Positions 6,401 to 29,838 of a stretch of 64,000 nt of DNA are shown here, in pieces; the first letter of the stretch is position 1; every line of letters begins with the position of its first letter. This stretch comes from Oculina patagonica (Eukaryota). The position numbers and the translations under genes were made by a program. The stretch spans positions 6,448,001-6,512,000 of the forward strand of contig NC_135761.1 in NCBI RefSeq assembly GCF_052425735.1, in the 5' to 3' direction. Below the pieces are notes generated by a model. That model did not search any database, was not told the DNA's origin, and worked only from the letters and a program-made list of their open reading frames with translations.

Positions 6401-7350
6401 GAAAGACTCGCTACTGTTTGAGAAAACAAACAACAGGAGCAATGCACCTAGCCCTAAAAACAATACAACTGCTTAACTATAGGACCAGAAGAATTACAAG
6501 CTTATAAGTGCCACAATACTACTGATCCAGGGGTGGCTAGTTCCACTCCGGTTTGCTTGCAGTTAGTTTCACTCCAGTCTGCTTGCTGTTAGCTTTTACT
6601 GTGGTTTGCTTGCGGTTAGCTTTTATTTGTTGGTTAGGTTTTGTTTCGTTTATTTTGGCATGCACTAAAACCCCGGCAAAACAACATAACCACCGGAACC
6701 ACTGAAACAAAACCTAACCAACAAATAAAAGCTAACCACAAGCAAACCTGAGTGAAAGCTAAGCACAAGCAGACTAAAGTGGAACTAACCACAAGCATAT
6801 GGAGTGGAACTAACCGCAAGCAAACCAGAGTGAAAGCTTACTGTTCAGGGTTTCGGGCTAACCACGGGATTTTGTTTCAGGTGTTTAGTATAGTGTACCG
6901 CTGAAATACTATCCAATTTCTAAAACATTTCAATAAAATTCTTGTGTTCTGTGGTGTTCTGTAGTGTTAGGGGTATCGAATGGTAAATGCGAGACTGGGA
7001 GATGGCGAGACTGATATCTTTTCTGCGAGCCCGGGAGACCTTTTGAAGGCTTTTTAGCCTTGCAAAAGAAATCGAGACTCCGAGAAGGCGTCAAAGAAAA
7101 ATTCGAGACGACGAGATCCTTGAAATTTGGCTATACTTTTGCGAGACACGCATTTTTTGAAGGACCATTCACCACCCCTAGTGTTCCAGGAAGTTCTGTG
7201 GTGTTTTGGGGAGTTCCGTGGTGTTCTAAGTGTCAGCAGCTTCAGTTGCAGGCTATTCTGCAGTTTAGCCGACAGTTTTTTGGAACCGAAACATCATCAA
7301 ATATGTTCCAGACCTCCCAGGGCCTTATTTCTTGCTGTCAACATTAGCAA

Positions 7351-7427
<77 letters not shown>

Positions 7428-7775: not shown

Positions 7776-8460
7776 CTTCTTGCTATGGTAAAATTGCTGG
7801 TTTATATCAATGTTTTTAAAACACCTCCAATACAGACGCCATTTTGTATTTTGTGTCGCAAAGTACGCTGGGAAGACTTGTCCCAATCTCCCAGTGTTTC
7901 ACGCCGCGCGCACGAGCCCGGGAGGAAGGAGGGGGGGGGGGGCATAAGCTAAAATACGCCTGTTTATTCAGAAGTTGAAAAAATTAGCCATTCCGCAGCC
8001 GTTCTGGGAACATGATTTGTGAGTTCAACTGTTTCATTAGGATCGGCACATAAAAAGGTTCGGCGTCTGATCCGATTCAAAGTCGTGACGACCCAAAGAA
8101 CGGCTGACTATCATATGCCATTACTGGGAGAAGTAAAGAGAATACTACAACACGTGGGAACAAGAAGAAACTGTGCTTCGTATCTCTGCGGGAAAGTAAT
8201 GACGGCTTTTTGGTCCCTTACCATAAAAATACCGCCTTTCGCTTACGGGGAAGACCGCAAAATCCAAACATTTAACGGTTGGTCGTGTGATATCAAAACT
8301 GCTAAGCGAAGTAGTTTCAGTTTCTTTTTTAGAATTCACGGAAGTGTATATACCTATAGCGAGTTGTATGTAAATTTCACAAATATATTTACTTATAATC
8401 ACTTTATCTGTTCGATCTTTGTGGCAAACTGAGGTAAGTAAAAAACTATTTCGATAACTG

Positions 8461-11400
8461 GGTCACAATCCCTTCGACTCATGTTGCGACTGGGCACAAC
8501 TCTGAGTTACTGAAATGGCTTGATCTACAATGTTTCATTCTAGGACTGAGTACTGCTCAGGGCCGATATGATTTATATATCTTGCACATAAATTGCTGGC
8601 TAACGCATTTCCATACAATAAAAAGTTGAACGTCCCTTGCAACTTCTGGCCGGTATCAAGGCTCGGCCGGGAAGTAATGAAAAACTGACCCGAAGGAACA
8701 ACAAGCTACCTCTGTAACTACCTCTGTCAAGCGACCGCCGCAACTGATGGCTAACAAAGTAGTTTGACTTCAAAATTTTGCAAAAATCCATCCTTGGCTG
8801 TTTCTTGGAATCCGGCATAATTCAGTTGCTCACCACTAAACAAGTATACAAACTGAACCGCTGCAGGTAGTTTCCTTCCTGACACACTCTGACTCTACAA
8901 CTGCATTTTAAAAAAATCATAATAAATCATAATAGTGTTTTACTGAATTTCTGTCGAGTGAGATCAAACTTTAATGGTTATGGATTTTGTATAAAGAAAT
9001 TGATATTTTGAACAGTTTTGTTTCTTGGAAATTCACAATTCTCTGACTGGGCATTGTGCGATCAATTTTGACAATGAAAAAACAATGTGAGTGACTCATG
9101 AAGCCAGCGTGACCTAACTGTGCTCAGGAGTTCATCCGGTCTGTGCTTATCAAGCATGTCAAGTTACACTTTGTAACTTAATTTTAGTTTCAAAAATAAT
9201 TTATAGTTAGAAAGATCTACGAACCCTTTTTCCCACAACAAAAAATGCTTTCTCGTAAAGCATTTTTCTGTACTTAGTCTTGTATCTTTTTTTAATGTGC
9301 GCTTTCCTATTTTCTTGGAAATGCTGAAATGTAAATTCAATCTATGCTGAGACTATGACTTCCAAGGATGTGCAAAATGACGCTAGCTAAACCAGACCTG
9401 GGCAGCTATGCAGACAGTTTGATCTTTTGATAATGACTGAAAGCATATCAAAAAAAATCCCCGCGAGCTGCTCCTTTTTCGTAGAACTCGGTCGGCTACA
9501 TCAGTTCTGTATCACACTGTCAAAGCTATTCATCAAATCCATACCATGTAAGAGTTCCCATTGATTTGGAATAAAACTTCGTTTTTGTCTACGAAACGCT
9601 GCAGTAAAGTTTCAGAAAACCTTGAGTGATCTTCTTCTTAACTCTGACTCGGCGGACATCAGGAAAATTTCAAATCCATGCAACCGGTCTGCACTGACCG
9701 CGAATCAGTCTCATTTCTATTAAGTGGAAGGCACCATTTGCAATTTCGTTTGCCTCGAAACTATCACTGAGTCATAATTGCAGTAGGTAAAAAAAAAGGC
9801 GTTAAAACAAATAGGAAGATATTCTTACAGTCCGTTTCTTGGTTCTTCTAACCCTAAAGCTTTTTGTTTTAAAACAAATTCGATGTGTCTTGCTTTTTCT
9901 TGGAAATGTTGACAGGGAAAAAGGGAATCTTAATAGAGAGGACGGGCTCCTTGGTCAGCGGCTGGTGGTGTAACATCAAAACTGCTTCACGAAGCATTTT
10001 CACTTTCTTTTTAGAAACATAAAGGTGCATTTGCCTTAAGTAGCGTGTTGTGCGTACAGTTCTCAAATAGATACTCATAGCCTTTTTATATGCTCGATCT
10101 TTGAGGTAAGTATGGTTTTCTTTTCCTTCTGCTTCAGTACAGTTTATAAGGTGACCTCTTGCTGAAATGTTTCTCGATCGCTTGGTCACAATCCGTTCGA
10201 GTCGTGATACGAATGGGCACAACTCTGAGTCACTGAACTGACTTGATCAACAATGATTCCCGCTTTAAATGAGTACTGCTCAAGGCGTTATGGTTTATAT
10301 TGCACATGAATTGCTGGCTTACGTATAGCTTTCTGAACATTCCCTTAACAATCGACCATAATGAGAAGTTGAATGTCGATCTTTTTCATCTTCGGACAAT
10401 AAAGTCAATGAAGTTTTAGCCGGGAAGTACGTAATGATGGAAAACTAACATGAAGAGAGAAAAAGCTACCTCTATCTATAACCTCAATATCCTCTTTCAT
10501 CAGGCAAAGGTAAATCGGTTTGAAGTCACCTCACTGAACGTTTTGTAAATATCTTTCTCCGAAATGTTTCGGCTTGGAATCCGGAAGCCGTCATTCGGTT
10601 GTACTGTCAGACAAGTTTACTAACTGTACTGCCGTAGATAATTTTCTTTCTAACGCATCTCGAATCTGCATTTTTTTTAATTATGATGGCGTTTTACCCC
10701 ACTGAAATTGGGTAAAGTTTGTTCGATCAGTGGATTACAGGAACTTTTATATACCCAAGGCTGGTCCGTCGAGGACTTGCAAATAGAACGTTTACGTACG
10801 ATTTACTGCTTTGTCTCGGCGAATTTTGTTCTAGGAAGAGATCAATAAATAATCAAAACGGCAGATAACGTTTTGAGTTATTTATTTTGTAATAAACGAA
10901 GTGTCGAAGTTAGTCTTGGTCAGTTTCGTTTCTTGGAAATGCATACTCTAGTGACTCGTGACTCCAGCGTGACCTTTTAATATACGTTTTGCTTCATTTC
11001 AATGTCATGGAAATGTTAAGATGGATTTTACTGCAGAAGCAATTCCTTAAAAAGAGTTTTAAAATAACACCGGCTAAACCAAATCTTGCCAGTGTGATCT
11101 CTAGGTAATAAATACGAGTCAAAGGCGTATCGGAAACTTATAACAAAAGCTTACCTGCGTCTAGTTCTTTTTCCGGGAAAACTCGGCCAGCATATCCATC
11201 ACATCAGTTATTCATCAAAGCCATATACTTCTGGTGCATAAAGAGCCTGTATGGATTAAGCGCATATCTCCATTTTTGCCTTCGATAATTTAAGCTGCAA
11301 TAAAGTTCAAAACCTTGTCAGAACAAGGCCAGTTCTCTTCCTTTAATATATCGTCCTTGGCTTCTGTAAGCCATGAGTGATTTTCGTCTCGACGATTAGT

Positions 11401-13165
11401 CTGCATGGCATCATTTTTTTACCATCCGAATTTTTAATCCATACAGCCGGACTCCTGCAAAGCGTATTAAACCTGCACTCATAGCGAATGTCGTTTCTAT
11501 TGAGTGGAATTGCCTTCATCCCGAAGCTAGGACTGAGCCATAATGGTACTGGTAAATTAAAGGCGTTAAAATGGAAATTTTCTAGTACAACAGGGTTAAT
11601 AACTTTTTCTTGCATGAAGTCCGTTTCTTAGAAAATTCAAGTTTTTATTAAAAGTTCAGCATTCTAAGAAATGATATGCTAATAAAATAGTTGACTCTAC
11701 AAACAAGTGCATTTTTGAAATACAAAATAATGCCGGTGTTTTATCCCGCTTAAAATGAGACGAATTTCGTTCCGCTGAGCAGGATCAAACATTTATAAAG
11801 CGCTGGCCCGTTCAAGACTTGCCGATTGGAAGAAAGGCTTACTATTGACGTGTACGGATAAGAAAAAACGATTGATATGTATGGACTATGCATTTAAAGG
11901 GATAATAGAAACGTTTTGGTGTCGAAGCTATAGCTAGTCTTGAGCAGGAGTTCGTTTCTTGAAAATTCAATAGTCCACGGACTGCACATTGTTGATATAC
12001 GATTCTAAGAATAAACTGATAAACTGTGTCTTGTGACACCAAAATGACCTTGATGTAAAAGATTTGTCTTAATGACTACTTTATATGCTTTTCAAGCACA
12101 ATTGATCAGTTTTACCAAGTTATAAATTTAGTTTGAAAAATAACGACTTTTTTTTAGTACAGATAAGATAAGTACAGATTTCTCACTTCGCAAAGTACAG
12201 ATTTTCATTTCGCAAAGTACAGATTTCTCACTTCGCAAAGTACAGATTTTTCACTTCGCAAAGTACAGATTTTTCACTTCGTTTCGTTTCGTTCCGTTTC
12301 GATTCGCAAAGTACAATAAGCCCTTTTTTGCCAAGATTCTGAGAACTTTCAAACTGCTTCCTGAAAAATGTATTTTTGCAAAGGTTTTATTGTCTCCTTG
12401 GCCTTTTAACTCCATATTCGATTCGTATTCTTCGATATGTTTTCCGGCATATTTCTTGGAAATGTTGATGTATGCATGGATATCGAAGAATTAAATATTC
12501 AATATATATATATATATATCCAATCAAGACTAGATGCGCTTTAAAAATCAATCAAGAAGCGTTGGAAAATAACGCTAGCTTAACCAAACCTGGGCAGCTA
12601 TAGTTTGATCTTTGGTGACATGTACACAGGTTACTGTTTATAATATGACTGAAAAGCATATGGAAAAGCTTACCTGTGTAGCCCGTTTTTCGTGGAAACG
12701 TTTCGGCCAGCATCTGCATGATTATAGTTATCCATCAAAGCGTACCATGTAAGATATTATATTAAGACTCCATTTTTGCCTTCGAAAAAGCTGCAATAAA
12801 GTTTACATTTGTTTCAGTCTAGCCATGCGGTTTCCTGTATTGAAGTCTTTTGTGCGGTTTTCGCCTCAACAGTCGGACCAGCTTTAGGGAAAATGGACTG
12901 AGATATTTTCGATCAAAATTCTAATCCATGGCGGCTTCTACGCTTGATCAACTAATCCTGTAGCCACAGAATGCAGATTCTTCTCACCGGAAAAACCAAC
13001 GTAGAATTGCATTTGCCCCTGAACTAGTACTGAGTCATAATGATAACTGGTTAACAGAAAACCGAGAATTTAAAACAAATACAATGAGGCAGAAAGGTCG
13101 AGTTCTCACACTGAGTCGCTTCTTGGAAAATGCACGTTGTTGTTAATAGTTTAAGATTCTAAGAA
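8461..13165. repeat. Diverged tandem triplication of a ~1.4-1.5 kb non-coding block (copies ~8461-9845, ~10184-11670, partial ~12450-13165)
   Basis: Shared anchors in the same order: GGTCACAATCC..GGGCACAACTCTGAG (8461/10184), AT(T/C)CATCAAA (~9529/11210/12730), GCTGCA(G/A)TAAAGTT (~9598/11294/12790), ACTGAG(T/C)CATAAT (~9766/11532/13029). Confidence 0.8.
12157..12323. repeat. ~22-bp tandem repeat CGCAAAGTACAGATTT.TCACTT with a (GTTTC)n tail, probably a transposon end
   Basis: About 4-5 units followed by GTTTCGTTTCGTTCCGTTTC and AAAGTACAATAAGCCC. Confidence 0.7.
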
Positions 13166-16100
13166 GGATGATAGGGTTATAATATGTTAATTAAGTTATG
13201 GCGTAGAATAAAAAGAAATTAAACATTTTATATGGAAATAAGAATAATAACAATAACAAATATTAGCAACATTTATACTCTAGAAGGCATGTTGATGATT
13301 TGTGTCGATGAGGAGGTTTTTGTTTGGAACTCTACCCGGCGACAGTACAGTTTGTCAGTTCATAATTCAACCGGCCGCGATAGGTCCTTCTAGTCAGTAC
13401 AGCTCCGTAATCTTTTATCAAGATAGCAGTGTATAAAATGTTTTAGCACTAGCTATAGCAACATAAATGAAAATTGAGGCTGATTGTGGGAGTAAAACAT
13501 GTAAAAGGGTCCATAAATTAAGTTAAAGGGGGCACCGTGATGAAACGTACCAGTGAAATGGGGGCATTGATATTATTCAGCTGTCCGCGCAATTTTATTT
13601 TCTTCTAGCTCGTAAGTAGGCTGCCACTTGGTCCAATTGTATGGAAAAGTGAAAATGATGTAGGGTGGCGGAGAAGGGGAAGGGAGGGAGAGAGGGAACG
13701 ATTGCGGGAGGGAGGATGGGAGGGGGCCATGATTTATGCTGGCCCTATACAAATACAACGGTTTGGTGCGATAGAGGTCCCTGAGTATCTCAGCTTTCTT
13801 CACTTTGCTTCTTTGAATACCGTAACTCCGGCTGAAATTTATATTATAGCCCATGTCCGGGATAAAAGTCTTTTTCTTGTGATTTTCTTGGAAGTGAAAA
13901 CCCACTCATTATCAGCAGTAGCATACTTGTGGTGTGAATTGATGATCACGTGGTGGTGACTCAGACTGATTTGAAAATGCTAGGTGAAGCACTTTTACTT
14001 GAATACACCAACCCCTGCTTGATTCGAAACTGTGAAAGTGGTTAAACGTCCTCTTAGGTCTTTCCATCTCCACTGGATAAAAAAGGTAATAGCTTCAAAA
14101 TTATCTACATTGAAATGCTATGTGTTTTGTGTTAGAAATATTTCTACGAATTGCATTCTAAATGGTGTTCTTCTATAGTAGTTCGGTACTTCCGACTTTC
14201 TTCCTATATTCGAAAAATTACGCTAGGATACAATGCTGAAGAGTCAAGGGATCAGTTCATGCGGGCTTAAAATTGTTAAGAGGTATTGCATGTCTCAATT
14301 TTTTAACCCGTGCAAGAATAATGATAACTTGGGGCAGAAAAATTAGTAATAAATATCGACTGTAAGTCGAGGCCGACGGTTATGAACGAGTATTCGTCTT
14401 CAACCCAGCCCGCTACTTCTTGTAGTTTAAACCTACGGAACAAACTGTATTTATCGCCCAGAACTGATAATCTTATATAACGAATATTTGTTGTTGTTGT
14501 TGTTTTTTCGTTTTGCCAAAAGAACATGATAATAACCGCGTAAGAGAAGTAAAAGTCAAGCCGTTTTAAAGCGAAACCACTAAAAGTCCAGACTCAAGAA
14601 CCATTTCCGGCTAGCTCTTTCCACTCGCAATTTCAACCGGAGATTCTGTAGCAAGTTCCTTTTTTACTTCCTGGAGGCTGTACACTGTTTAAAGTCTTAT
14701 TCACTTCCTTGTTGATGCGTAGGGAAAAAGCTACTTAAAGACCAACTTGATAGATTATTTTGATGCTAGGAAATCATCAAATCATTGATGCAAAACAAAG
14801 GGATCACGATCTTTTCTAAGAAACGCGTAAAATAATCTTTTAACGAGACACGAATCTTTGATACGAAAATACACACGCTTGGTTTAATAATGTTTAAAAA
14901 TTATGGCTTCTCTTGGGTGAAATAACCTTGGTTTGGCTCAGTAGATGAGATTAGATATTTCTTAAACAAGTGCATGATAAAAATCCGAAGTAACATGAAG
15001 TAAAAGCGAAATTAAGGGCGTGCTTCGACACATATTTGAAGTGTTTAGTCTGTAACACACTATCGTCCGGTTTTTCTTGGAATCTAACCAATCCGTCTGT
15101 TATTTTAGCTTGGTTTACGTTTGTGTACGTTTATGAAAGTTCGCGTCTTTTATTATTTTTGCTATAACAGAAGAGTGCATTTTCTCACCAAAGAAAATTA
15201 AATTTTAAAGCAAGTGAAAAACAAGGCTTTTTCCGCTATGACTGATAGTATTTGATTGCCACTGATAAAACGACTTTGTGCTCCAAAGTTGCTGATTCTC
15301 GGCTTTTCTAAGAAATTTACTGCTATATGTTCACTGAAAATGTGACGAATGTTTATTCAAGACATGGCGAAATAACCCTACAGAGCTCTTGAATATTGAA
15401 CCTTCCATCTGGAGGTATACAGTTCTAAAGGAGACTATCGCTAACTATTGGGAAGCATTGAAAGTCACGACCGGCTAAAATGAACACTGACGAAATAAAA
15501 GCTCCTTTACAATCTAATTTATTCGCTTTTTCCACTTCTCTGTTATTCTCCAGACATGAATGTTTTTTGATAGCAAACAGTGCTACTCCCTAAAAAACAT
15601 CATGATGAGTGCATGAGCACGGTTTATGAGGAAGCGGAAGTTGATAACGTGATAGTGCTACTTCCTCCAGCTGGGACCCCACTTCCGCTCGCTACACGCT
15701 TGGACTACTACTTCCGCTTGCTTTTGCGCCTTTGCGTTTGAACGAGTATCTCCCTGAAAGCAAACTCTTTGTTCCAGTCTCAGCTAGTCTGGCGTTTTGT
15801 ATGCATATGCCTGTTTATAAAAGGCATAGAAAATGTTGGCGGCTGTGTGTTTTGTTCGACTAAGACCAAACGGTACACCGAGTCGTCGGCTCTTCTTATT
15901 TTCCACCGGGAAAGAGGACAGAGCGGGGGTGGGGGCACTCCCCTATACAAGCTATATAGGTATGTCCAGCGACACAGTACAGGGTATGACTATCGTATCC
16001 GAGCCGATTTACTCTAAAATAGGGTATGGTTTCTACACTCTGGTCAGCAGCTAGGTACAATTCCTGGAAGAAACAATTTTATCATTGTTATTGACACTGT

Positions 16101-16508
16101 GAATTTGCAGTAACTGTCAAATGTTTACGCAAACGGAAGCAGTTTGGTCTGAATCGATTTCTGGGTCACGATACGAAAAATCGCATATTTTGGTCTGAAA
16201 TAGGCTGAGGGTTTAGGAAGCGCGCCGCATGCCCCACTAAAATTTTTGGAGAGTATTAGAATTCGAAATATAAATATAATACTTTGATCTCTGCAGCAGT
16301 TAGGTTGCCTCGGTGAGGTGGTCAGACTTCGATAAATCAAGTAGTTGAAACTTTAGTAAACCAGTTTGAGATTTCCCATCCCAGTTCATATATATATGTA
16401 GTGGATTAAATTCGAAAAGCCGAAAGTCTCATAATAGGACACCTCTCAAACGAAGGCTTTCTTCGTATCGACAGGACCTGGACATCGATTGCTGTCTATA
16501 AATATATC

Positions 16509-18485
16509 ATGGGCGATAAAGGTTGTAAAGATTCTAAGAGCTTGCCAGTAGAAGAAACACTCGACAAGCCACTGCCACATCCTGTGCAAGAAAGGGGGGA
16601 TCAGCAAGATCTTGCGGTGAACTTTCTGCGGTGGCTGCGGCTGGCACTTCAACTACAACAGGGTCAAATGATAATACAGGGAGAAGTAGCTCAAGATCCG
16701 TCAAAGTGGGCAAAGCTCTCCCAGTTCAAGACCAATGCCATGCAAACAGTGGGAACCATTTTGGCAAAGTTCTTCGCCTTCTTCGTCGCTGCAGCTACAT
16801 GGATCATCAAGATGGAATCTGAAATTCCGATGGAAAAGATTAGAGAAACAAACGAGCTGAAAGAGAAAGAGGAAGAAATCAGAGTTACTAAGCTAAAGGA
16901 AATCGAGCATCACACATGGAACTTGGAAGAAAAGGTACATTTAATTCGAATCACATTTTTTGTATCTAACAGTGATTTTGTTGCAAATAATATTCTGCTT
17001 ATGAGCAGCTCATGCGTAGTTGTGAAACTTGTGACCACTTCTAAGAGAAATGGCAGCTCGTTTTCCAAAGTTATCGAAGAGCGATTTGAAGCTTCCACTA
17101 AAACAAAAACAAGCTCGGTGATAAGATGGTAAAACAACTATTAAACTCGGTTATCGTAAAATATCGCGATTTGTCAGTGACACAAAGATCGATATTTTGT
17201 TTCGGCAAATACAATCACTTCATCGCCAGCCACTGAAAAATCACGATATTTTGATGAACCTCGTCCAAGAATTGTTTTTATCTAATTTGCAATTACCATC
17301 ATATAAAGTACCTCCAGGAGTACCTTCGACAGCCTTCTCTATACCCTTCAGCTCTTGTCCCTAATTGCCACCTATTACTAATAAGTGTTACTAAAGTTAC
17401 TGCTTGTCTGTTCCTAAAATAAATTGCAGATCAAGCGAGCCAGTCGAGGTGAAAATTCTTTCAGGATCTCCCATATCGAGAACATAGAATGGGAAATGAG
17501 TTTGATAACGGCAAAGGAGCTTGTAGTGACCTGTGGACTTCATATAGCATATTTGCAAGAGCTTGCGGGAAAACTGGAATCAGGAGCACGAGAAGTGATC
17601 ATGATAAAGGAAATGATCATTAAACGAATAATCATTGGGGGACTTGCCTTCGCACTTTGTGCAAGTAAGTTTATCTTAACAAGCTGCTCAGTCACAGCTA
17701 TTGGAACGTAATTTTCTCACTTGCATTTATTAGAAGTACTTTTTCTAGTTCATTATTAGTTGCAGAATTAGAAGTAGAAGTACGTTTTTCTCAAGTGCAG
17801 ATGTAGAAGTGTGTTTTTTAACACTCAGTTAAGGTAATATGCCCTTACTTAAAAAAAAAAAAATAAAAATAAAAAAAAAAAAAAAACAGATCCTAGCAGT
17901 GTGCAGGTCGCGTGTCACATATCAACCTCGAGTCACTCGTAGCTCAGTTGGTTAGAGCGCCCAACCGGTATCTGGGAGGTCATGGGTTCGATTCCCGTCG
18001 GGGACTCCGAATTTGTCTTTGTACCATGCTCGTGTCATTGTTGAAAAAAGATCATCTTTATTACATACAAATACCAGAGTGATCAGCGAGAAAACTGGAA
18101 TAATATGCCAGCTGCAAGACAGTTTAACTGAAATGTTTTTCTTTGCTGTTTTGTTTTACTATCTTCAGTGTTGTATTACGGGGCTTATGTAAAAGAAGCT
18201 AGCGAGACCGGAACTACTGTGAAAGAAATCACGGTTGCAAGCCTCATGGCCGTTGGAATGGCGATGTTCTGTAAACGCGAGGCTCAAGTGTTATTCAACA
18301 ACTCTAAGCTGGTCGGTGAATGCGAACAAGTAAAATACGAGCTGGGAAAATCCAAGCTGGCTTACATGAAGTACAAACAATCCGTGGAAGATACATTGCC
18401 AGAGCAAAAGAAGCTGCTGCATGTAATGGATCATGAGGTCTCCCTGTATAGCTCCCTACAGCCACTGAAGTGTAAGGACGATTAA
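16509..18485 (+). CDS. Uncharacterised helical membrane protein, cluster gene A (325 aa; coiled coil / hydrophobic hairpin / coiled coil)
   Basis: Exons 16509-16934, 17430-17664 and 18169-18485 have GT-AG boundaries and phases 0 and 1, giving 978 nt open. Hydrophobic segments IIIGGLAFALCAMLYYGAYV and ITVASLMAVGMAMFC. The C-terminus is clearly similar to gene B. Confidence 0.8.
17930..18060 (+). mobile_element. tRNA-derived SINE head (intron 2 of gene A)
   Basis: A box TAGCTCAGTTGGTTAGAGC and B box GGTTCGATTCC; irregular acceptor and anticodon arms. Confidence 0.65.
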
Positions 18486-23099: not shown

Positions 23100-24600
23100 T
23101 TCGATCGGGTGTTTCGCAGGAGGAAACCGAAAGCAAATTTATTTGTTGGATAAGTTAAAGCGTTGAATAGAAGTTCTTCAGTTGTATCTGCAACTCGGCC
23201 CTGCATAAGGTAAGAGATTGTTTATGTCAAATTTAAAAGTGGCTGATTTTTGTTTTGGTTTTATACTGGATTTCTTGGAATCAGGCGCTTCCGTGGCACT
23301 TCCGCCATTGGTCGTTTTGTACATTTCGACAGTTGTATCTTTGTGATCAGTTCTTTATGTTAAAAATATCGCAAACCAGCTTTTCAAAGGGTTGGAAGCG
23401 GAAAATATTTCCGCGAAGTTCAGAAAACGCATTTCTTGTTGTCCGCTCCGGGCCAGCTTCAAATCTCGAAAACTCCTGTCGGAACTGAAACTACGCCAGT
23501 TCAGGAGGCTTGTTGTGTTGACGATTCTCCTGGAAGCTGAGTCATGATGATTATTACGTAAATCTCGTTTAGTTTTATTTTGTCTAGTGTTGTAGAGCTT
23601 TGTAGGCTCAAAACCATTTTAGAGAAAGGAAGATGATCAAACTGATTAGAGAGAGTTTTTAATCGAGCTATGCCAGTTTTCAGTAGTTTAATTGACTCCA
23701 AAACATTGGAAATTGCAATCGCGTTTCTGGGAAATTAAATAATTTCAATAACGTAGCTTAGCTAGATATGACAATACTAACACGGCATATTATGCCTCAT
23801 GATTTGTTTCTCCAATGCCCAAAGAAGACAAAACTGATCTTGAAAACTACTTCAGCCCTATAGGCCCGCACAAAAAGCCATGTCGCAAGAATGAAGCTGA
23901 GATAGCTGGTCGAATTGAATTGAATACTCCTATAAACAGTCTTAAAAGTCTGGCCTTTCTTAGAAATCCTATCCATCAGTTCTTTCCGTTTCGTTTCGTA
24001 AAAAAATCATTTTCAATTTATGCTTTTTTCTGTAAAAACACGTGAAAGAGAGAACTTTTTGACAAATAAAGACAGCAAGGTCGATGATGTTTCCTTTAAT
24101 GTCAGGAGTTTATAAACCAGGCCGATACTAAACTAAGCTGAACATAACGTCGGCTGTTTCTCGGAATTGCCGCTGTCGGTACTGCTTGATGTCTGAAACC
24201 TGTAGTCTGAGAATTTAAAGAATGTTTATTTTTATTACAGGGAAAAACCCCATTGGAACTTTCTGTTTAATTTGGTGGTGGCCCCAGGGCAGACAGTGGG
24301 GTGAGCGGAAGTTAAAATGTCAAGAAAACAAGCGAACAACTGTTTTTGAAGAGAGAGCAAAATGATAGTTGATCTCAGTCTTATCATATCAGTGAGAGCG
24401 TAAATGCTTTAAAGTTCACTTTAGCCATACAAGCCTCTGAAGTGTAAACGATCCGTAGTAAGCATGTAAAAATATATCCATAATGCTAGCACTGTGCGTT
24501 AACTCTTATCAATATTTTAATTATAAACATTTCTATTTAACTTTATTTTTTAACGTCAAAAAAAGGCAAGGGAATCCCCCCTCCTTCTTCCTTGAGGTTC
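23100..24600. promoter_or_regulatory. STAT/IRF/NF-kB motif cluster upstream of gene B
   Basis: TTCNNNGAA at 23272, 23409, 23725, 23957 and 24158; GAAACCGAAA at 23123; TTTCCGTTTCGTTTCG at 23983; GGGAATCCCC at 24570; GGGAAAAACCCC at 24240. Confidence 0.55.
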
Positions 24601-25226: not shown

Positions 25227-27318
25227 ATGGAGGATAGAGCCCCCGACAATTTTTCTAACCGATCAGAGATGTCCCTGGAGTCACTTAAACATCCTCATCA
25301 AGAATCTGGTGACCAAAAAATGTCCAAGGCGGATGAAGAGTCAATTATGCGCAGTTTATTGGAAAACCCGAAGATACTGGAACAGCTACGTCAAAAGTTG
25401 AACGAGCCTGAAAAAGCAGAGGACCCGTCGAAGATAAAGACACGCTTACAAGCCATCATTGGTTTCTTCCAGTGGTTCGGTTGTGGAAGTCCTTCTTGGG
25501 CGAAGGCCATTTTTCTGTATATTTGGACCAGATTGCTTGCTATACTCACCATGCAGTTACAAACTGGGAAAGAAAACCGTACAGAAATAGATGAGCTGCA
25601 CAAAAACCTGAAGGCAGTCAGTGAGACGCACGAGAAGGTCCTAGAAAAAGTTGGAGAAATTGAAGACAAGGTATAACTTTTTAAAATTGGTATTTTTATT
25701 TCATTCAATTTCTACAATGATTTTACTTGTAAAATCCTGATTACATTTGTTAGTTTCGGCAGATTAGTTTTGCTTTTTCCCCTTTAGTCATCCTCTCATT
25801 AAATCATACATACCTTATATCGAAGAATCGTTGACCACCCACAAAAAGCATAAACCATAAACGATGCGACCCAATATTGTTTACTGGGAAATCGGAGAAA
25901 TAATCGTCGTCTGCTACCGGAAAAACACGATAATAAGAGAGGTTGTAACAATCATGCTCTTAAGGCTCTCAAAAAAGAAAATGTCTTGATAATCAATTAA
26001 CGGAATATTACTAAGCTTACCAAGGTTCTACCAAGAACATCATTGGGCCATATCGTTCATGGTTTATGCTTTTTACACGGTCAACGTTTCTAGCCTCACC
26101 TAATTAAATAACGATTTCTCGAACCTCCCGATAATTAGAACCCAAATTTGTATATTTTCCTCAGTCGAGCACTGCAATTTTCCTTCGATTTCTAGAACCA
26201 ACCTCCCGATAAATCGGCCTTCCTGAGGGGAGGGGGAAGGGAAGAGAGATTCCTCCCTCGCACTTCCTCCCCAGTTTCCCCTCCCCCTTAAAAAAGGCCT
26301 GATACTCAGGGTACCGTAGGTCGTACAATGCGATTAACCCCATGATTTCTCGAAAAAGTGTTCAATAGGCAATTTCCGAGTTACCCTTTGCCTCGGTTTA
26401 AAAACGAGTCTACGTGCGAAATCATTTAAATGAAAATAAGTTTGATTTGCATGAAAATGGTCGGCATATTCCCTACCTATAGGATGTTCGAGAAATCTGT
26501 ATTCTACTCTATATTGCTATTTTTACGCAGATCAAAGAAACCCGTGCAAAAGACTATAAGATCTTGAGCACCGAGAGCAAGGATTTAGAAATTCAGTTGA
26601 TCATTGCCGAGCGTGACCTGGGTAACTGCCAGGATGGCCTTAGTGACGTACAAGGGGACGTCGAGCGTCTCAAAGCTGTGATTGGATGGCGCATATTCCA
26701 ACAGATCATTGGAATTATTTCTGCAGTTGGATTAGCCGCTGTAGGTAAGGTTTATTTCGTTTTCTCGGACGTACTCTGTTGATCAACCATAATTGTGACC
26801 CGTAGTTACTAGAAGTACTACATTAACCAGAAAGGAATTATTTTTGTATTTGCCTTGTCAGCATAAAGTTAAGAGATTCAAGAAGGAAAATTGACTCTAA
26901 CTTCTCGCTGTGACATTTTTTTACCCGTTTAGTTCTCTTCTTCTGCGCCAATGTTTTCAGCGTCCCACAAGAAGGGATACCCTTGGACCGAGTTAATTCA
27001 TTCAGTTCAACAACAGAAAGTACTACACATGTCAAAGTGAAAGGCTTAACGACTTCCGACTTCATAATGATCGCAGGATGCTTAGCCGCTTTGATAGGTG
27101 TACCGTTGAAGTGGATGATTGAGGGTTTATACATCAACTCGAAGCTGTTCACCGAATGTGGAAAAGTCCTCAAAGATGACGTCCGAAAAGCGAAGAGCCT
27201 TCAAACGAAGTTGAAGAGAGCGGTTGAAAAGGAACTGCCCGCAATGAAGAAACATCTGGTCGTCTTGGAGTATGATGTGTCTCGGTACGCCTCGTTGCAG
27301 AAGCTTGACGCAGATTGA
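25227..27318 (+). CDS. Uncharacterised helical membrane protein, cluster gene B (347 aa), paralogue of gene A
   Basis: Exons 25227-25670, 26531-26744 and 26933-27318, phases 0 and 1, 1044 nt open. LYINSKLFTECGKV...VEKELPAMKKHLVVLEYDVSRYASLQKL aligns with gene A LFNNSKLVGECEQV...VEDTLPEQKKLLHVMDHEVSLYSSLQPL. Confidence 0.82.
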
Positions 27319-28975: not shown

Positions 28976-29838
28976 CCCGGGGGGACTCGAATATGAAAGT
29001 GACGGGGATTCTCGTCGTATCGCTTAGGAGTATAAATTTCGGATTTTTGGTCTCGCTTAGGGTGTTCCGGGCAAAACGCCAATATTTTTAGCCATTATGG
29101 TCTCGTATAGGGTTACACCCGTAGAAATATACAAATATAATTTCTATTCTTAGGGCCTGTTTACATGATTCCGGAATGACTTTCATTCCGTAACGAAACT
29201 CGTTCCTTCATTCCGGAACAAAACTCGTTCCGGAATGAAGTTCGTTCTGCATTTACATGACAGAGTCGACCGGTTCAACCAAAGGCATTTCACGTGCGCG
29301 GTTTTCGCGCGAGATCAAAACAAGATGGCGCATGCTTCGCGCAAACATGTTTTTGTGCCCATCAAATGCCGTATCTACAATTTTAACGAGTTATTTGACC
29401 ATAGCGCTGTTTGTTTGGGCTAAACAGGTAATGCTATTATGTTTTTTGCTCAGGATTCAAACTGTGAAGTCCGTATGCGGTTTCATGAGTTGCGATTTCA
29501 TCTTGGAACGAAATTCGTTCTGTGTTTACATAAAATGTAATTCCAGAACGAAACTTTCATTCCGGAATGAAAACCGGAATGAACTCATTCCAGAATGACT
29601 TGACTTTCGTCTCGGTATCATGTAAACAGACACAGAGAAATGTATGGGGATGGAATGAACTCGTTCCGGAATGAAAGTCATTCCGGAATCATGTAAACAG
29701 GCCCTTAGTTGTTTGGTATCTTTTAGGGGTCAAGAAAAGTTTGAGCTACACCCAGATTGGTCTCTTTTAGGGGTTCTTTTCAAAATTTCCGACGAGCATC
29801 CCCGTCCGTTTCATATAGGAGTCCCCCCCCCCCCCGCG
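28976..29838. mobile_element. Poly-G/C-ended MITE containing a nested PIF/Harbinger MITE (29153-29704)
   Basis: Outer CCCGGGGGGACTC..ATATGAAA / TTTCATAT..GAGTCCCCC; inner GGGCCTGTTTACATGATTCCGGAATGA TIR with TTA TSD. Confidence 0.8.

Follow-up and report, generated by a model that had tools for sequence, protein, structure and literature searches.

The window analyzed here, a 64,000-nucleotide stretch of the Oculina patagonica genome (assembly GCF_052425735.1, contig NC_135761.1, positions 6,448,001 to 6,512,000), contains a gene that we refer to as gene A and, in front of its coding sequence, a dense array of the palindromic word TTCN3GAA (TTCNNNGAA). Gene A corresponds to LOC144649232, which is annotated as encoding an uncharacterized protein of 325 amino acids. 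It occupies positions 16475 to 18485 of the window on the plus strand, with an ATG at 16509 and coding exons at 16509-16937, 17427-17663, and 18159-18485. The gene belongs to a family with three members in the genome, one of which, gene B, has its ATG at 25227 of the same window. Neither the gene A nor the gene B product had a match in Pfam or the ESM Atlas. The array, which was defined by pattern search, k-mer counts, and shuffled controls and was not assigned to a strand, extends from 8002 to 16069 and consists of 27 matches to TTCN3GAA, 20 of which conform to the narrower pattern TTCYNRGAA.

A dense array at this position had been proposed in an earlier reading of the sequence (the original prediction), and that part of the proposal holds. 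The hand count of 23 sites given there was too low and is replaced by the 27 found by pattern search, while the accompanying sub-counts were accurate: the words TTCTTGGAA and TTCTAAGAA occur nine and five times, respectively, within 8002-16069, and a single TTCCGGGAA is located at 11171. The number of sites expected by chance was estimated in several ways. The whole genome contains 232,489 copies of TTCN3GAA in 529.4 Mb, which corresponds to 3.54 per 8,068 bp. Eighteen genomic stretches of 10 kb, taken at fixed positions on six chromosomes, gave an expectation of 3.85 and a maximum of 11 in 10 kb, and 1000 dinucleotide-preserving shuffles of the array region gave 4.05 ± 2.03, again with a maximum of 11. 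The remainder of the 64-kb window predicts 5.8 sites for the region. These independent expectations converge on about four sites for a stretch of this size. The original prediction had staked the array on a density above genome background and on the absence of equal enrichment at neighboring spacings, and both results agree with it: 27 sites were found versus approximately four expected, and the region contains three copies of TTCN2GAA and none of TTCN4GAA, as compared to a background of 3.7 and 3.5. The excess is restricted to the 3-base spacing. A heat-shock element, which is built from inverted nGAAn units and would have the TTCnnGAA spacing, was considered and rejected, given the three N2 sites versus 3.7 expected. 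Elsewhere in the window, at 29169-29689, eight (T)CATTCCGGAATGA palindromes occur within ∼500 bp and are the source of a local TTCN2GAA excess.

The same words emerged when no pattern was specified in advance. An unbiased k-mer scan of the region against background ranked TTCTTGGAA (nine versus 0.15 expected) and TTCTAAGAA (five versus 0.09) at the top, aside from words contributed by a minisatellite. The 20 of 27 sites that fit TTCYNRGAA compare with 34% of background sites (P = 2e-5). An alignment of all sites, with the consensus tTTCTtgGAAatg, contains almost no information beyond approximately three flanking bases, and the preferences within those bases are weak (T at -1, and A/T/G at +1 to +3). 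Because the flanks are nearly uninformative, the word does not belong to a longer repeat. Of the 683 copies of the 12-mer TTTCTTGGAAAT in the 529-Mb genome, five lie within the array. ISRE (interferon-stimulated response element), kappaB, ETS, and NFAT words were also counted, and none was clearly enriched within the array region.

Much of the array lies in a diverged tandem triplication at 8276-13185, the alignable parts of which are 68 to 82% identical. Comparison of the copies delimits three plus-strand units: U1 (8276-9958), with sites at 8335, 8802, 9022, 9312, 9478, and 9897; U2 (9959-11621), with sites at 10555, 10829, 10930, and 11171; and the partial U3 (11622-13185), which lacks the segment with the leader exon described below and has sites at 11625, 11662, 12003, 12337, 12453, 12689, 13120, and 13157. 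By eye, six site positions are common to the units, and at these positions the half-sites are kept while the spacers sometimes differ (e.g., TTCGTAGAA / TTCCGGGAA / TTCGTGGAA). The common positions imply that the 1.6-kb ancestral unit was already site-dense. The original prediction had conceded that duplication inflates the count and had maintained that many sites lie outside the duplicated block, which is correct. The DNA entirely outside the triplication (3,158 bp) contains nine sites versus 1.4 expected (P = 1.5e-5), and U1 together with the unduplicated DNA (4,841 bp) contains 15 versus 2.1 expected (P = 9e-9). Thus, duplication multiplies the signal without creating it. No further diverged copies of the unit were detected by nhmmer, either between 13.2 and 16.5 kb or in the DNA in front of gene B. 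An origin of the units from a dispersed repeat or transposable element was rejected since they have no copies elsewhere in the genome. The sole part of the array that does is a 23-bp minisatellite (AAGTACAGATTTCTCACTTCGCA; 12170-12281, plus strand) inserted in U3. Arrays of this minisatellite were identified by genome search on at least seven other chromosomes (C1, C3, C5, C7, C9, C12, and C13).

Much of the array also lies in transcribed DNA. Contigs from sequencing runs that we took to be RNA were mapped onto positions 8200-14199. One contig joins a proximal leader exon on the plus strand (14021-14085, start approximate; donor AAAAAG/GTAATA, where the slash marks the exon-intron boundary) to the first coding exon of gene A, which starts at 16475, 34 bp before the ATG. 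The junction defines a 2.4-kb intron in the 5' untranslated region (UTR) of gene A (14086-16474, plus strand; acceptor acag/GACCTGG), within which six of the TTCN3GAA sites are located (14142, 14814, 15074, 15306, 15330, and 16061). A second leader exon, located in U2 (9982-10105, plus strand; donor TTGAG/GTAAG between 10105 and 10106), is present in contigs from three runs. In these contigs the U2 leader is preceded by 30 bases that are not in the assembly, and the exon that follows it (ACCTGAAC...TAAACAT) is gene-A-like, two bases off the gene A exon, and likewise absent from the assembly. This exon could belong to an unassembled copy or to a divergent allele. The U1 counterpart of the leader, a non-coding exon read from the sequence (8340-8433, plus strand, start approximate; donor CTGAG/GTAAGT between 8433 and 8434), was not seen in use among the contigs mapped to 8200-14199. 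On the minus strand, a contig that joins 13128-12674 to 11294-10077 represents a spliced antisense transcript that overlaps U2 and U3 and has no long open reading frame. Its intron (11295-12673, minus strand; donor ACACAG/GTAAGC, acceptor tttattgcag/C) is a canonical GT..AG intron, the splice sites of which had been predicted from the sequence ahead of the contig evidence. A loose contig end at 9226 was discarded because it derives from an unrelated locus on C8. The array thus spans two or three alternative promoter/leader modules, a 5' UTR intron, and a spliced antisense transcript. The leader exons, the antisense transcript, and the ISRE-like element described below do not figure in the original prediction.

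A search with the C-terminal exon of gene A identified a protein fragment of 58% identity on a 2.19-Mb coral contig (ENA ERZ25067872), and the syntenic locus of this second coral was examined over 28.7 kb composed of two overlapping loci. There, TTCN3GAA is absent from the first 4.95 kb, and 26 copies lie in the 11 kb that lead up to the gene A orthologue. Twenty-five of these fall within 9.0 kb versus 4.2 ± 2.0 in simulations, with two N2 and four N4 sites. The word TTCTTGGAA again occurs nine times, all on the plus strand. The DNA upstream of gene A in our window is 41% alignable to that of the second coral, at 81% identity. The two loci differ in their duplication structures and were misaligned by global MAFFT, so conservation was scored on chained BLAST blocks. 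All six half-site bases are kept in the second coral at seven of 16 collinear window sites, as compared to 7.6% of random 9-mers (P = 9e-5), and within alignable blocks seven of seven sites are conserved versus 23% (P = 3e-5). The cross-species conservation that the original prediction had proposed to look for is therefore present, with sites kept above the surrounding DNA. Across the 16 aligned site pairs, not all of which are independent, the number of mismatches per position is 1, 0, 0, 0, 4, 1, 1, 0, and 0, as compared to 28% of aligned columns that differ overall. In this alignment, the central base clearly drifts while the other eight positions are held. A free central base between held half-sites is the pattern of a palindrome that is bound by a dimer.

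Conservation extends to the arrangement of sites and to the promoter modules. A paired-site module at 11618-11677 on the plus strand, in which TTCTTAGAA at 11625 and TTCTAAGAA at 11662 are 37 bp apart, is 83 to 88% identical to two places in the second coral, and a second copy of the module (13111-13166, plus strand; sites 13120 and 13157) is 84% identical. In these conserved 60-bp modules, 37 to 43 bp separate the sites. The leader exons and their donors are conserved as well: the U1 donor lies within a block that is 83% identical over 153 bp, and the proximal leader exon with its donor has two conserved copies in the second coral. The gene A exon had no matches in a metagenome scan, and the contigs carrying the further relatives P0002, P0004, P0005, and P0006 were all shorter than 3 kb. 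None of the 40 related-coral variants listed (206 more exist) falls inside a site.

A smaller cluster accompanies gene B. It consists of five TTCN3GAA sites, four of which fit TTCYNRGAA, at 23272-24166 on the plus strand, between a predicted leader donor at 23209 and the ATG of gene B. The upstream DNA of the two genes cannot be aligned. Three of the five sites are conserved in one related coral locus (L037), and a further coral metagenome contig (L038) keeps two of them; no site cluster was found in a related contig (L039).

Taken together, we conclude that the array is very probably a conserved and functional set of sites. Our explanation is that it would be a homotypic array of GAS (gamma-interferon activation site) type, with the pattern TTCYNRGAA and mostly the word tTTCTTGGAAat, that serves as the 5' control region of gene A. 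This control region would comprise the 2.4-kb 5' UTR intron and the ∼6 kb in front of it, in which two or three promoter/leader modules are located. The array may have grown as promoter modules, each with several sites from the outset, were duplicated in tandem, with selection keeping the sites while the intervening DNA decays. The single STAT5-like STAT of the coral would bind each palindrome as a dimer, and many sites would act jointly to give strong, signal-dependent transcription of gene A; the smaller conserved cluster would act likewise for gene B. In this scheme the array presumably activates rather than represses, and STAT is the reader that we favor, although with noticeably less confidence than we have in the function of the array.

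The GAS motif is TTCnnnGAA (PMC3564941). With its strict N3 palindrome, its Y/R inner positions, and its free center, the coral word has the GAS shape that is bound by STAT dimers. A candidate protein was found in the genome, where a Pfam STAT_alpha search returned one weak exon that led to a STAT gene on C7 at 18.35-18.36 Mb (18350000-18362000; L034, L035). The open frames of this gene include FIIEKQPPQVLKIQTKF, and one piece matches human STAT5A/B at E = 7e-8, ahead of STAT6. The exons encode DNA-binding and SH2-like pieces, which suggests that O. patagonica possesses a STAT5-like protein. Both TTCTTGGAA and TTCTAAGAA fit the STAT5 consensus (TTCYNRGAA). The original prediction of a STAT super-enhancer for gene A therefore stands insofar as the array is real, N3-specific, located upstream and in the 5' UTR intron, and conserved, in a genome that encodes a STAT5-like protein; the binding of STAT would follow from these properties by inference. 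A super-enhancer is defined by chromatin occupancy, i.e., an exceptional load of Mediator, BRD4, and H3K27ac over clustered enhancers, rather than by sequence.

Known STAT targets provide a useful comparison. Among vertebrate STAT5 targets, the GAS elements have the same core, N3 spacing, and Y/R inner positions. Near the promoters of these targets, the sites usually number between one and four and are often paired at a distance of 6 to 20 bp, whereas the coral array has dozens of sites and conserved pairs 37 to 43 bp apart. The intron of Socs36E in Drosophila reportedly carries a cluster of STAT92E sites. Clusters of partly conserved STAT92E sites mark STAT-regulated enhancers in Drosophila and have served to locate them, and those of vvl and trh resemble the coral array in having many TTCnnnGAA words over kilobases, both upstream and intronic, with conserved and non-conserved sites mixed and a spacing too wide for tetramers (PMC2877871). 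The coral array is denser (27 sites in 8 kb), and one word and one orientation dominate. STAT92E also uses 4n sites, of which the coral array has none, and binding and regulation have been proven in the fly whereas the coral array is known from its sequence.

Several observations weigh against our interpretation. All nine TTCTTGGAA copies are on the plus strand, and TTCT left halves outnumber AGAA right halves by 21 to eight, with the same directional bias in both corals. A symmetric homodimer does not require a one-way orientation, which fits descent by tandem duplication and also fits an asymmetric motif; we favor descent through repeated tandem duplication as the cause. The canonical vertebrate TTCCNGGAA occurs at just two sites. 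When copies of the unit were classified by hand, 13 of 17 sites were intact, a proportion that neutral decay could also leave after correction for ascertainment; the global pairwise alignments of U1 to U3 were too gappy to score site retention, and the hand classification was not used as evidence. No site cluster accompanies the third paralogue (C4:6768121, minus strand), which lies 256 kb away. An exon-wise search of the genome with Pfam STAT_bind was blank, and the STAT gene was recognized from its pieces alone. In addition, to our knowledge cnidarians may lack a canonical JAK.

The orientation bias is central to the strongest alternative, in which the array is functional and under selection but is read by a factor other than STAT that recognizes a directional T-TTCTTGGAA-AT. 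Candidates include a BTB zinc-finger protein of the BCL6 type, a Rel/NFAT-type factor reading TGGAAA, or a novel cnidarian factor. This alternative would account directly for the strict strand bias in both corals and for the weak flank preferences, and TGGAAA is found 14 times on the plus strand and five times on the minus strand of the region. However, TGGAAA is only ∼two-fold enriched, tandem duplication also explains the bias, the spacing is strictly N3, and constraint on both half-sites with a center that alone is free is the mark of a dimer-bound palindrome. A BCL6-type factor, which the original prediction had named as its alternative, fits worse than STAT. BCL6 sites (TTCCT(A/C)GAA) overlap the GAS shape, but BCL6 constrains the center, which varies freely in the array, and the one TTCCTAGAA-type core was found at 10829 on the other strand. 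As far as we know, BCL6 is a vertebrate protein. We regard a directional non-STAT reader as rather unlikely, though it is the likeliest of the alternatives.

A second alternative places the function in RNA, as a sense element (UUUCUUGGAAAU) within the 5' UTR introns of genes A and B, or as its complement in the antisense transcript, that would be bound by an RNA-binding protein. All copies are sense-oriented relative to genes A and B, much of the array is intronic or otherwise transcribed, and the spliced minus-strand transcript would provide the complement. Nevertheless, several sites lie farther upstream than any leader exon observed, the constraint is symmetric about a free center, unlike that of a single-stranded RNA motif, and the N3 palindromic spacing has no obvious rationale in RNA. 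This possibility is improbable. Least probable is a functionless array, produced when a unit that by chance contained the word was duplicated locally again and again. The triplication exists, the uniform orientation fits common descent, and the three paralogous units do not clearly retain more sites than neutral decay would leave. We nevertheless disfavor this explanation because the excess of sites remains outside the duplicated DNA, because site conservation greatly exceeds that of the flanks in a coral to which only 41% of the DNA is alignable, and because the gene B cluster is independently conserved in DNA that cannot be aligned to that of gene A.

If the STAT reading of the array is correct, the locus makes clear predictions, namely that the coral STAT5-like protein binds the sites and that LOC144649232 and its neighbor are induced. 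We know of no direct STAT target enhancer that has been defined in cnidarians, and the locus supplies a very dense, conserved collection of concrete candidate sites for studying the role of STAT in the absence of a classical cytokine/JAK system. It would also be a clean example of a homotypic cluster that was expanded by tandem duplication of promoter modules and then held by selection amid decaying DNA.

One further element is located at the distal promoter module. An ISRE-like AGTTTCAGTTTC (GAAACTGAAACT on the minus strand) is found at 8313-8324, directly upstream of the U1 leader exon, and its U2 counterpart, TTTCACTTTC, is at 9998-10007, upstream of the U2 leader. The TTTCAGTTTC core is kept in the second coral, and chance would produce the full 12-mer pattern only ∼0.04 times in 8 kb. 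As in interferon-stimulated promoters, where ISRE and GAS occur together, a perfect AGTTTCAGTTTC near the U1 leader is surrounded by GAS-type sites. The likeness is incomplete, since the ISRE core is not enriched in the array region (two versus 2-3.5 expected). An IRF is a candidate reader of the element. We know of no interferon in corals. It is conceivable, and we put this forward as a speculation, that stony corals run an ancient, interferon-independent inducible program of STAT-plus-IRF type, in which GAS arrays are combined with a proximal ISRE-like element and modules are added by tandem duplication. The effectors of such a program may be lineage-specific small membrane or coiled-coil proteins such as the products of genes A and B. 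If true, the program would outline a coral STAT regulon that is older than bilaterian cytokine signaling.

The DNA on the upstream side of the array has features of its own. Directly upstream of the array, at 7353-7425, is a run of 73 G (97% pure), and the second coral has a G-run at the matching place, ∼300 bp before the conserved leader module. The run may be a conserved boundary that forms a G-quadruplex. Farther upstream, two short tandem repeat arrays of 26- to 27-bp units (6538-6625 and 6728-6838) are mutual reverse complements and could form a long hairpin. The upstream neighbor of the array is an intronless open reading frame of 265 amino acids at 503-1300 with several hydrophobic segments, which may resemble a fat-storage-inducing transmembrane (FIT) protein.

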